From the sequence record NC_047713.1: a stretch of 64,000 nucleotides of DNA; one strand, given 5' to 3'. Numbering within the stretch: the first letter of the stretch is position 1; the number at the start of each line of letters is the position of its first letter. Positions 9,945-60,252 of the stretch are shown here, in pieces. The notes beneath the pieces were generated by a model, which saw nothing but the letters and a program-made list of their open reading frames with translations, ran no database searches and was not told where the DNA came from. A program made the position numbers and the translations under genes.

Positions 9945-9983
9945 AAACACATAAATAAGAAATGTAACGTTCTTATTACAACA

Positions 9984-10095
9984 CTTCCATCTAACCGAGA
10001 CCTATGGGGAAGTAAAATACGTCTCTAATACCTACACCGGAGGGTGGTGTAGGAATAATACTATCGTCAGCTCCCCCTGGCACTACTTACCCTTT
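9984..10095 (+). ncRNA. Structured psbA 5' leader, probably the PhotoRC-II RNA motif
   Basis: GAGAC(9997)/GTCTC(10021) pairing, CCTACACC/GGTGTAGG hairpin (10031-10053), possible CTTCC/GGAAG pseudoknot; the position upstream of a cyanophage psbA fits that motif (family assigned from memory, not searched). Confidence 0.55.
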
Positions 10096-58313: not shown

Positions 58314-58919
58314 ATGACAGAAGCGACAGAAACCAAGAAACCGCGTAGCGCACGAAAGGCACGCAAACCAGCGGCACCCAAAGTCCCTACCTCCCTACCA
58401 AACAATCCTTTGATGTTTGAGATTCTTGACATGGCATCCCGTACTAGGGGTACTGAAAAGAAGGTAGATGTTCTCAAGAGATACGGGTGTGGTGCTCTAA
58501 AGGCACTATTCATCTGGAACTTTGATGAAACTGTAGAGTCTGCTCTACCACCAGGTGAGGTTCCCTACTCTGGATATGAAGAACAGCATGTATACAGTGG
58601 AACACTAACTGATAAGATTGAAGAGTCTTCACGTCAGATGTATGAGAATGGAAGTTTCTCATTGGGTTCTACTGATGCCAACGCTAAGACTACACTAAGG
58701 GCACAATGGAAGAACCTCTATCACTTTGTTGAGGGTGGTAATGGTGGTCTATCTAAAACACGTCGTGAGATGATGTTTATCAACCTCCTAGAATCTGTTC
58801 ATCCCCTGGAAGCAGAGATCCTCATCCTAGTCAAGGATAAGGAACTTGACACCAAGTATAAGGTTCCCTTTGAGGTTGTAGAAGAAGCATTCCCCGAGAT
58901 CCAATGGGGAGGACGTTGA
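58314..58919 (+). CDS. Conserved T4-like cyanophage hypothetical protein
   Basis: LKALFIWNFD..LPPGEVPY..REMMFINLLESVHPLEAEILILVKDK. Confidence 0.7.
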   Translation: MTEATETKKPRSARKARKPAAPKVPTSLPNNPLMFEILDMASRTRGTEKKVDVLKRYGCGALKALFIWNFDETVESALPPGEVPYSGYEEQHVYSGTLTDKIEESSRQMYENGSFSLGSTDANAKTTLRAQWKNLYHFVEGGNGGLSKTRREMMFINLLESVHPLEAEILILVKDKELDTKYKVPFEVVEEAFPEIQWGGR

Positions 58920-58936
58920 CATAAATACAAAGGATA

Positions 58937-58945
58937 TGTTATAAT
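58937..58945 (+). promoter_or_regulatory. Extended -10 promoter
   Basis: TGTTATAAT; predicted start about 58951, just before the riboswitch. Confidence 0.7.
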
Positions 58946-58952
58946 ATCCACA

Positions 58953-59040
58953 CGTTCAACCCACTTCGGTGGGTCGCAAGTAAGTCGCGGAACGGATTCG
59001 TTCATCCAGGAAACTGGACGCAAACGACTGAAGGAACGGG
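58953..59040 (+). ncRNA. Tandem glutamine riboswitch-like elements (glnA / Downstream-peptide class)
   Basis: Two CGTTCA-hairpin-CGCAA...GGAACG units (UUCG and GAAA tetraloops) upstream of a YRG-motif peptide. Confidence 0.75.
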
Positions 59041-59072
59041 TTTTAACTAACCTCAACTTCAGGAGTACTACT

Positions 59073-59240
59073 ATGAACACTCTCGCACTCATCAAAAAGC
59101 AGATCAACAAAGCTGCCGCACTTCACAACGCTCAGATTTCTCACACCGCCTATCGTGGTGTTGAGTATGATACTCATTGTGTAGAGTCTTCCGAGACACA
59201 CGGCACTTTCTGCTACCGCGGACGCACTTACAATAAGTGA
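59073..59240 (+). CDS. DUF4278-type small peptide (55 aa)
   Basis: MNTLALIKKQINKAAALHNAQISHTAYRGVEY...FCYRGRTYNK; two YRG motifs; AGGAG SD; absent from the ORF track. Confidence 0.8.
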   Translation: MNTLALIKKQINKAAALHNAQISHTAYRGVEYDTHCVESSETHGTFCYRGRTYNK

Positions 59241-59261
59241 GTTCTAACTGAATAGTGTAGG

Positions 59262-59292
59262 AAGGGGAAGGACTTGTTTCTTCCCCTTTTTT
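59262..59292 (+). terminator. Rho-independent terminator
   Basis: AAGGGGAAG...CTTCCCCTT followed by a T run. Confidence 0.8.
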
Positions 59293-59323
59293 GTGCTATA
59301 ATATAAACAAGTATTCTATCATC

Positions 59324-59503
59324 ATGGACACAGACAAAGTAAAGTTTCTCATTCAATCCATAGAGGTTCTCATTGATGAACTAAAATCAGAAGTATATGC
59401 TGAGGGTGAAACTTTTAAAGTAAGTGAAACCCAGTACTCAGAGGAATCAGAAATTCCAACGACTATAACAAACTTTTATCCTGAAGTGACGGACGATCTA
59501 TGA
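59324..59503 (+). CDS. Conserved cyanophage hypothetical protein
   Basis: MDTDKVKFLIQSIEVLIDELKSEVY. Confidence 0.65.
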   Translation: MDTDKVKFLIQSIEVLIDELKSEVYAEGETFKVSETQYSEESEIPTTITNFYPEVTDDL

Positions 59504-60252
59504 AACCAGTCAAGGCAGATACACTCCTCAAACTAGATCCTCACCAGAAGGTTGAGATGATCCGTTGTACTCCCAACCCACAGCAACTTGTGTTTATGGG
59601 TGGTAAGAATGACTATAGTGAGTTACCTATTGAAGACACTGACATTCCTCAAGAGAAGGAGTGTGGTGAGTGGGTTATTGAGCAACTCTTAGCGAACGAG
59701 AGAGGACACTGGGGACCCCTAGAACACCCCTCTATCACCTTCTCCTGTAGTGGGTTCGTTCATAATGTTATCGTTCAGGCAAGAACCCATAGAGTAGGTA
59801 TTAGTTTTGATGTACAATCACAACGATATACCTGCAAGAGAATCATAAAGGTAGCAGAGGGGAAACTATCACCCCAGTCAGTATTCTATGTGAGACCTCC
59901 TGGTTTCTATACTAATAGGAAGGGGAAGAAGTACGAATGGATAGACGCAGACTATCAAACTCAGTTAGGTCTCTGTCAGGCTGCAGCTGAACGATTTGCT
60001 CGTCAGTTTGAGAATGGTGTATCTGAAGAACACGCTCGTGATTATCTACCACAGAATATTCGTCAGAACTTTGTAGTCACCTTTAGTCTTCGTTCTCTCC
60101 TACACTTCCTAGATCTTCGAGCTAAACTAGATGCTCAGTTGGAAATCCAAGCTCTATGTGAGGCTATGATTGAACCTACTAAGACCTGGATTCCTGAAAT
60201 CTTTGAATACTACTCAGAGAAAAGACTACACAGGGCAAGACTTGCCCCCTAA
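59500..60252 (+). CDS. thyX: FAD-dependent thymidylate synthase
   Basis: GHWGPLEH, QARTHRVGISFDVQSQRY, EHARDYLP, LRSLLHFLDLR, AQLEI. Confidence 0.93.
   Translation: MKPVKADTLLKLDPHQKVEMIRCTPNPQQLVFMGGKNDYSELPIEDTDIPQEKECGEWVIEQLLANERGHWGPLEHPSITFSCSGFVHNVIVQARTHRVGISFDVQSQRYTCKRIIKVAEGKLSPQSVFYVRPPGFYTNRKGKKYEWIDADYQTQLGLCQAAAERFARQFENGVSEEHARDYLPQNIRQNFVVTFSLRSLLHFLDLRAKLDAQLEIQALCEAMIEPTKTWIPEIFEYYSEKRLHRARLAP

Follow-up and report, generated by a model that had tools for sequence, protein, structure and literature searches.

Two glutamine riboswitch cores in a cyanophage leader are probably nested through a common P3 helix with swapped P1 strands

Two glutamine aptamer units that precede a 55-aa peptide gene in Synechococcus phage ACG-2014f (Kyanoviridae, Atlauavirus) probably form a nested double aptamer, in which P1 strands are swapped between the units and one P3 helix and one expression platform are held in common, the whole serving as a glutamine-responsive translational ON switch. 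The window, that is the whole stretch of DNA analysed, comprises 64,000 nt of NC_047713.1, and the region is 100% identical to KJ019037 and many sister isolates; all features given below lie on the (+) strand. The units occupy 58953-58994 (unit 1) and 58999-59038 (unit 2), with a 4-nt linker between them. Comparison with relatives shows an arrangement in which the outer aptamer would be assembled from the 5′ half of unit 1 and the last GGAACG, and the inner aptamer from the 5′ half of unit 2 and the first GGAACG, with the linker as a hairpin loop. That the P1 strands are swapped in this way is concluded from the covariation of the linchpin pairs in relatives.

The first-pass annotation had proposed a glutamine riboswitch leader before a DUF4278-type YRG peptide, directly 3′ of a strong promoter, and this proposal stands. 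A check of the sequence placed the two units, AGTCG (58983-58987), CGACT (59025-59029) and the extended −10 exactly where that annotation had put them. The sigma-70-type promoter (58916-58945) consists of a −35 TTGACA at 58916-58921, an 18-nt spacer and an extended −10 TGT-TATAAT at 58937-58945; its hexamers match the consensus at 12 of 12 positions, plus the TG, and the DUF6433 gene upstream has its stop codon (58917-58919) within the −35. When the whole 64-kb window was compared with all Rfam families, RF01739 (Glutamine) matched at 41.1 bits, above its gathering score of 35 (E = 1.6e-05). The match describes one aptamer only, 58951-59042, spanning both units and covering all 53 positions of the model, with the CGUUC of unit 1 paired with the GGAACG of unit 2 and AGU...ACU forming a P3 that carries a 41-nt insert; in the terms of the model, a spanning fold is favoured over two separate aptamers. 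RF01704 (Glutamine-II, also called Downstream-peptide) aligned to unit 2 alone (58996-59046) at 32.1 bits against a cut-off of 33, with non-standard pairs in the 3′ hairpin and the 59019-59024 stretch aligned to the CGCA core. The covariance-model search suggested earlier for both families was therefore positive for RF01739, as a spanning match, and fell just short for RF01704. The same window also holds a PhotoRC-II RNA (RF01717) at 9971-10066 (+), a known cyanophage photosystem-associated leader, with 69.5 bits against a cut-off of 39.

The folding energy of the region is better than that of 200 of 200 shuffles (z = −3.9), and relatives of the region were found in 397 phage records. GenBank KJ019037 has no riboswitch or other RNA feature annotated at the locus, and RF01739 gave no match in the nearest record, G001. 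Among the matches listed, at least 120 and uninformative on cyanobacterial genomes, none was a real doublet in a cellular genome contig. Tandem glutamine riboswitches are already known, with 157 doublets described and called pseudo-cooperative (Sherlock et al. 2022), and the ACG-2014f locus is almost certainly a member of this published tandem aptamer class.

How the two cores are connected can be read from the linchpin, the long-range pair of x, the third letter of the junction (CG-x), with the letter 3′ to GGAACG (C19:G41 in glutamine-II), which closes the pocket in the crystal structures of both type 1 and glutamine-II (Huang 2019, PMC6698751). The Rfam consensus sequences of the two types carry it in opposite orientations, CGG...GGAACGC versus CGC...GGAACGG. 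We denote the letter of the unit 1 junction x1, that after the first GGAACG y1, that of the unit 2 junction x2 and that after the second GGAACG y2. Pattern scans of viral contigs yielded 238 distinct double-core leaders, after many chance matches from a loose first pattern had been removed with a script filter. In these, x1,y1,x2,y2 read C,G,C,G in 124, G,G,C,C in 62, C,C,G,G in 28 and G,C,G,C in 4, with a few having A or U at y1, while the combinations required by local closure of each unit (G,C,C,G and C,G,G,C) occurred in 0 of the 238. Among 100 model-aligned doublets, x1:y2 is G-C or C-G in every one and x2:y1 in 91, in both orientations, whereas the side-by-side pairs x1:y1 and x2:y2 form in only 37 each; all 54 sequences that discriminate between the topologies are in favour of nesting. 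In a 94-sequence alignment the outer linchpin is CG in 51 and GC in 43 and never unpaired, as expected of a type-1 linchpin. This pattern was not built into the search, since no scan fixed more than one of the four letters. The inner linchpin was counted by script from sequence positions, as y1 is spread over more than one column in both the MAFFT and the covariance-model alignments. It is the relatives that make the case for nesting, because the window's own letters (C,G,C,G) fit both topologies, and the P1 partners cannot be read directly from covariation because the P1 strands are invariant.

The second, independent line of evidence is the helix between the units. The complementarity of AGUCG and CGACU noted in the first-pass annotation is a real helix, P3, which covaries in relatives, and the structural coupling of the two aptamers that it had suggested follows from this covariation. 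Compensatory variants include AGUCG/CGACU, AGUCA/UGACU, GGUCG/CGACU and GGACGG/CCGCCC, together with AGCCGACA/UGCCGACU, AGCCGACU/AGCCGACU, AGCCGACG/CGCCGACU, GGACGACG/CGCCGCCC and AGACGACG/CGCCGCCU. At the two ends of P3 in the 94-sequence alignment, the pairs are AU 64, GC 21, GU 4 and CG 3, and GC 43, UA 22 and AU 6. The covariation score of the whole structure is 0.306, compared to 0.091 after shuffling and no more than 0.07 with slid partners. An 8-bp form of P3 keeps two conserved A-C mismatches; it is found in many viral-contig doublets of other samples (loci L385, L387, L399, L235 and others), in which the inner P2 hairpin UUCGCUAUUCGCAAAUAGCGAA is nearly invariant, a striking conservation for a stem that is otherwise variable. 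A local mini-hairpin P3 (AG-CCGA-CU), drawn by Rfam in some relatives, was considered and rejected, as the AGCCGACA/UGCCGACU relatives pair between the units and not locally. P3 points away to one side in the crystal structure of type 1 (Huang 2019, PMC6698751), so this helix should be able to carry an insert. Two parts of the earlier description have to be revised accordingly: it had closed each unit locally (CGUUC...GGAACG within each), whereas the linchpin covariation points to swapped strands, and it had treated the pairing between units as an addition to two tandem aptamers, where P3 is instead the common helix of the nested fold.

Laid out in this way, the outer core would be a type-1 (glnA-type) three-way junction. 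Its P1 would pair CGUUC (58953-58957) with GAACG (59034-59038), as in the RF01739 alignment, and its P2 would be the hairpin ACCCAC-UUCG-GUGGGU (58959-58974), in which all four scored pairs covary and which is 100% paired in 94 relatives; locus L001 has a different, longer hairpin at this place. Its P3 would pair AGUCG (58983-58987) with CGACU (59025-59029) and be common to both three-way junctions, which lie at opposite ends of this one helix. The outer junction CGCAAGUA (58975-58982) fits the Rfam type-1 consensus CGGAAGUA, with G58976 as the pocket G, C58977 as linchpin letter x1 (partner G59039, y2) and AGUA at 58979-58982 as the 5′ half of the E-loop, the 3′ half being GAA (59030-59032), after which G59033 precedes P1. 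P3 would have no terminal loop and would lead on to another three-way junction, in which the core is repeated as a circularly permuted copy. The P1 of this copy would be the hairpin at 58989-59003 (GGAACG 58989-58994, loop GAUU 58995-58998, CGUUC 58999-59003), which is present in the minimum-free-energy fold, and its P2 would be UCCAG-GAAA-CUGGA (59005-59018), with four of five pairs covarying and 99.6% paired. The inner junction CGCAAA (59019-59024) provides C59021 as linchpin base x2, and G58995 is its partner y1. Each core would thus keep the pocket letters CGUUCA, CG-x and GGAACG-y and a linchpin of its own (C58977:G59039 outer, C59021:G58995 inner).

The E-loop, whose letters we take from the Rfam consensus and the usual form of loop E, is complete only when the fold is nested, with AGUA coming from unit 1 and GAA from unit 2; a type-1 three-way junction (P1, P2 and P3, with AGUA and GAA flanking P3) is likewise found in this reading only. 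The search patterns fixed AAGUA in unit 1, and the restriction of AGUA to unit 1 is thus partly by construction, although an unbiased scan agrees. Apart from the two single linchpin pairs, the nested fold contains no pseudoknot. By nearest-neighbour energy it is at −30.2 kcal/mol, compared to −21.7 for the side-by-side fold and −30.5 for the minimum without constraints. No natural form is shorter than the ACG-2014f leader, in which both P2 stems end in tetraloops.

Three other accounts of these data were weighed. That the units are two independent aptamers lying side by side, each with a local P1 in a 'pseudo-cooperative' tandem and with AGUCG/CGACU incidental or a minor kissing contact, is suggested by their direct-repeat look, by Sherlock et al. 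2022, who count 157 doublets of this riboswitch as pseudo-cooperative, and by the ability of unit 1 to close on itself co-transcriptionally before unit 2 exists. We consider it highly improbable, as both linchpins would be mismatched in 54 of 100 relatives with 0 favouring this topology, an E-loop would be missing from both units, with no GAA in unit 1 and no AGUA in unit 2, the linker, only 4 nt long, contains no expression platform, the fold is 8.5 kcal/mol weaker than the nested one, and P3 covaries. The two arrangements might also be taken up in turn, unit 1 closing locally first and then being strand-exchanged into the nested form, the identical P1 strands acting as a kinetic timer and not only as a thermodynamic switch. 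Such an exchange is possible, the two CGUUC and the two GGAACG strands being identical, and the glutamine-II RNA is domain-swapped through the same helix in crystals (Huang 2019, PMC6698751). The local fold would be without a linchpin in 54% of relatives, however, which would make it a transient intermediate at most, and we give this account as slim a chance as the side-by-side one.

Somewhat better placed, but still unlikely, is the proposal that there is one working type-1 aptamer, with a P3 insert that is structured but inert and an inner copy that is a non-binding scaffold or folding aid. This matches the reading of the Rfam model, and the inner junction has no E-loop, 9% of relatives have no inner linchpin, and the inner P2 loop of most relatives contains a whole ORF, through which ribosomes would translate; tandem glutamine aptamers, moreover, reportedly show no cooperative binding in vitro (Ruff et al. 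2016, PMC5066625, citing Ames and Breaker 2011). On the other hand, 94 relatives show no variation in the inner CGUUCA, CG-x and GGAACG letters, and the two letters of the inner linchpin change together, as C:G or G:C, in 91 of 100, which is hard to explain without selection for a ligand-bound tertiary pair. For the nested double aptamer that we prefer, these same points nevertheless indicate that the inner site may not always be a working one, the 9 of 100 relatives lacking a Watson-Crick inner linchpin being candidates for its loss, and that the inner junction, having no E-loop and only 2-5 nt from its linchpin to P1, may be sterically tight.

The relatives also vary in what the loops contain. 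In most related phages the inner P2 loop contains a conserved ORF of ~55-60 aa where ACG-2014f has a GAAA tetraloop, and one scan found a long inner P2 of this kind in 96 of 127 distinct doublets. Loci L019, L014, L017, L004, L025, L038 and L060 bear such an ORF, at ~735-960 in each locus, numbered with the peptide ATG at locus position 1001. Its consensus is M-L/I/F-E-L-L...ELVET-V/L-K...PEC..YWDA-N/H-D*. The AUG lies in UCCC-AUG on the P2 5′ strand and the stop inside CGACU-G/A-A on the P3 3′ strand, and the final five codons of the ORF (WDAND) fall in the invariant aptamer core; the likely Shine-Dalgarno (SD) sequence of this ORF is the GGAG of a 3-nt linker region. In L006 (826-970), a close relative, a long non-coding hairpin of ~60 nt replaces the GAAA-capped inner P2, indicating that the inner P2 loop tolerates insertions. 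In L008 (800-1000), a different upstream gene, with an HNH-endonuclease-like C-terminus as judged by eye, extends into the outer aptamer, where it stops (...EMKSEWDASRA*); within 80 nt there is no CGUUC, the outer P2 loop may hold that gene, and P3 takes a further covarying form, GAGCAUA/UAUGCUC. L031 (859-970), when compared to L038, looks recombinant, with unit 1 joined at GGAAC to the last 22 codons of the inner-loop ORF and the inner CGUUC absent; RF01739 still scores 41.6 bits there, as one aptamer with a 65-nt insert.

Downstream of the double aptamer, the SD region CUUCAGGAGU (59057-59066, with the SD AGGAG at 59061-59065) is paired in the predicted OFF fold with the strand at 59024-59033 (ACGACUGAAG), forming eight Watson-Crick pairs around a tandem G-A. 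The minimum-free-energy fold contains 59028-59033 paired with 59057-59062, and 59024-59025 with 59065-59066. This anti-SD helix is the consensus structure given by RNAalifold for 36 leaders, and it covaries, its variable pair being GC in 16, AU in 14, GU in 6 and broken in 0, and an A-with-C mismatch was found in none of 194 distinct leaders. The minimum-free-energy (OFF) fold also contains a small hairpin, GGGUU/AACCU (59038-59053; 59038-59042 with 59049-59053), which occupies G59038 and the linchpin G59039; relatives have GGA...UCC or GGG...CCC at this place, by eye. Because the anti-SD strand is also the 3′ half of P3 together with the GAA of the E-loop, the aptamer and the SD-sequestering helix are mutually exclusive. 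The strand 59024-59033 would thus pair either with AGUCG and AGUA in the aptamer fold or with the SD region in the OFF fold, and glutamine would stabilise the aptamer fold, leave the ribosome site free and turn translation of the 55-aa peptide ON. The competing helices imply a translational ON switch of this kind, and its direction is consistent with reporter assays in which both glutamine riboswitch types act as ON switches (Klahn 2018, PMC6212724). By an energy model that includes neither tertiary contacts nor ligand, the best aptamer-enforced fold is ~10.7 kcal/mol less stable than the predicted OFF fold, a gap that is large for a millimolar ligand and that tertiary contacts and ligand must close. 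A further complementarity links the 5′ GUUCA (58954-58958) to UGAAC at the start codon (59074-59078), the two being paired in the minimum-free-energy fold; most relatives have AAC as codon 2 and some have AAU, and the pairing may be a second initiation lock or chance.

The peptide gene itself (59073-59240, stop included) is DUF4278-like and carries two YRGxxY motifs, YRGVEY (residues 27-32) and YRGRTY (residues 48-53), both invariant in 15 homologues. The peptide reaches 23.1 bits with Pfam DUF4278 (PF14105), under the cut-off of 25.3 (E = 9.4e-05), and all 15 phage homologues match this family (best E = 2.2e-05); at least 591 relatives of the peptide are found in viral contigs. The first-pass annotation had reported the peptide as missed by the ORF track, and the ORF is indeed at the position given; GenBank does hold it, as hypothetical protein AIX16799.1 (KJ019037). 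YRGxxY is typical of peptides downstream of these RNAs and resembles the T-loop of PII, and a decoy role has been suggested (Weinberg 2010 supplement). The idea that the peptide acts on or inhibits glutamine synthetase is a weak one, and a guess, since DUF4278 corresponds to an N-terminal part of IF17 that is called dispensable for IF17 function (review PMC6316151).

After the gene lies an intrinsic terminator (59259-59292), with a 14-bp stem (59259-59272 with 59278-59291) followed by a U-run; its hairpin has −18 kcal/mol (z = −3.4), and it is missing from the list of a simple terminator scanner. Promoter, leader, peptide gene and terminator together make a monocistronic, self-contained unit of ~340 nt. 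A second extended −10 (TG-C-TATAAT, window 59291-59302) is situated directly 3′ of the terminator and precedes the next small ORF, whose ATG GenBank places at 59325, and thyX (59500-60252); with a promoter on either flank, the peptide unit appears as its own cassette. Metatranscriptome contigs from four RNA libraries of four studies fall on the unit. One, 58952-59223, has an apparent sequencing-adapter remnant directly before its 5′ end, one covers 58943-59238, and another ends at 59291, the end of the terminator hairpin, while the immediate flanks are without coverage in two of the RNA runs. These contigs fit a short, abundant transcript and, being assembled contigs from RNA libraries, which can carry DNA, are supportive only. 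In RNA runs X4 and X16 there are short contigs whose match is limited to the conserved aptamer cores (58975-59007 and 59016-59044), the sequence between these being different; they are relatives of the leader within the same RNA libraries, some with a 157-nt ORF insert, and in X4 the word depths of two of these core-only contigs (56.8 and 75) exceed those of the longer contigs.

The cooperative or switch-like behaviour suggested in the first-pass annotation is so far unsupported. According to Ruff et al. 2016 (PMC5066625), in its account of Ames and Breaker 2011, tandem glutamine aptamers lie a few nucleotides apart, bind non-cooperatively in vitro, and have no identified expression platform and no known benefit. 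A single anti-SD/SD helix follows the double aptamer here, so that two aptamers would serve a single expression platform, as in the glycine type; an expression platform for each aptamer, as in a pseudo-cooperative tandem, is not found, the two cores having a 4-nt linker, swapped strands and a common P3. That both sites bind glutamine, that the switch acts in the ON direction and that the sites may be coupled are inferences. A bolder proposal, which we advance tentatively and hold to be rather doubtful, is that the leader is a true two-site sensor: the pockets would exist only with the common P3 formed, P3 would compete with the anti-SD helix, and binding at one site would pay the switching cost for the other, giving a steep, near-digital translational response. 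If so, aptamer-only constructs would not show the steep response. Insertion of a circularly permuted aptamer copy into its own stem would then be a new way to build a cooperative riboswitch, and the 92-nt phage version would be a minimal natural example.

Among the known systems close to the leader is the type-1 glutamine riboswitch (glnA RNA, RF01739), with which it has in common P1 CGUUC/GGAACG, a variable P2, the CG-x-AAGUA junction, GAA before GGAACG, the linchpin and the three-way junction. Like type 1, for which this is shown in the case of gifB (Klahn 2018, PMC6212724), it is a predicted translational ON switch, here before a DUF4278 gene. It differs in that P3 leads into a circularly permuted copy of the core and not into a capped hairpin, and in that its junction reads CGC...G, the type-2 linchpin orientation, where type 1 has CGG...C. 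A crystal structure of the type-1 riboswitch was reportedly determined by Ren et al. in 2015. Glutamine-II (RF01704; structure 6QN3) resembles unit 2 in the CGCA junction, the absence of an E-loop, the YRG peptide downstream and a GGAACG strand inside a larger hairpin with downstream sequence. Unit 2 is nevertheless below the cut-off of that family, its GGAACG has the CGUUC of unit 1 as partner, and the enclosing helix is here the anti-SD helix, which we read as the OFF state. The leader has two cores a few nucleotides apart, as do the tandem glutamine aptamers of Ames and Breaker 2011 (cited in PMC5066625) and the 157 doublets of Sherlock et al. 2022, although the literature accessible to us describes separate aptamers or complete riboswitches in series, as opposed to a common P3 and swapped P1 strands. 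The tandem glycine riboswitch, too, has two homologous, joined ligand sites and one expression platform, but its aptamers lie side by side with tertiary contacts, whereas here a helix of one core takes up the other core and belongs to both. In the accessible literature there is no mention of swapped strands or a common helix in these RNAs, and an earlier description is possible.

In cyanophages at least, then, natural sequence variation indicates that the two riboswitch cores have one helix in common and exchange their P1 strands. For annotation this matters in that Rfam gives one aptamer with an insert, or misses the locus when the insert is long. The nested topology would also bear on the choice of constructs for tests of cooperativity and on how variants with genes inside their loops can work, and the ACG-2014f leader, as the shortest form and with tetraloops on both P2 stems, is well suited to structure determination and mutant rescue. 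If glutamine is bound, an abundant marine phage would tie the production of a conserved small protein to the glutamine level of its host, which is a report on nitrogen status.
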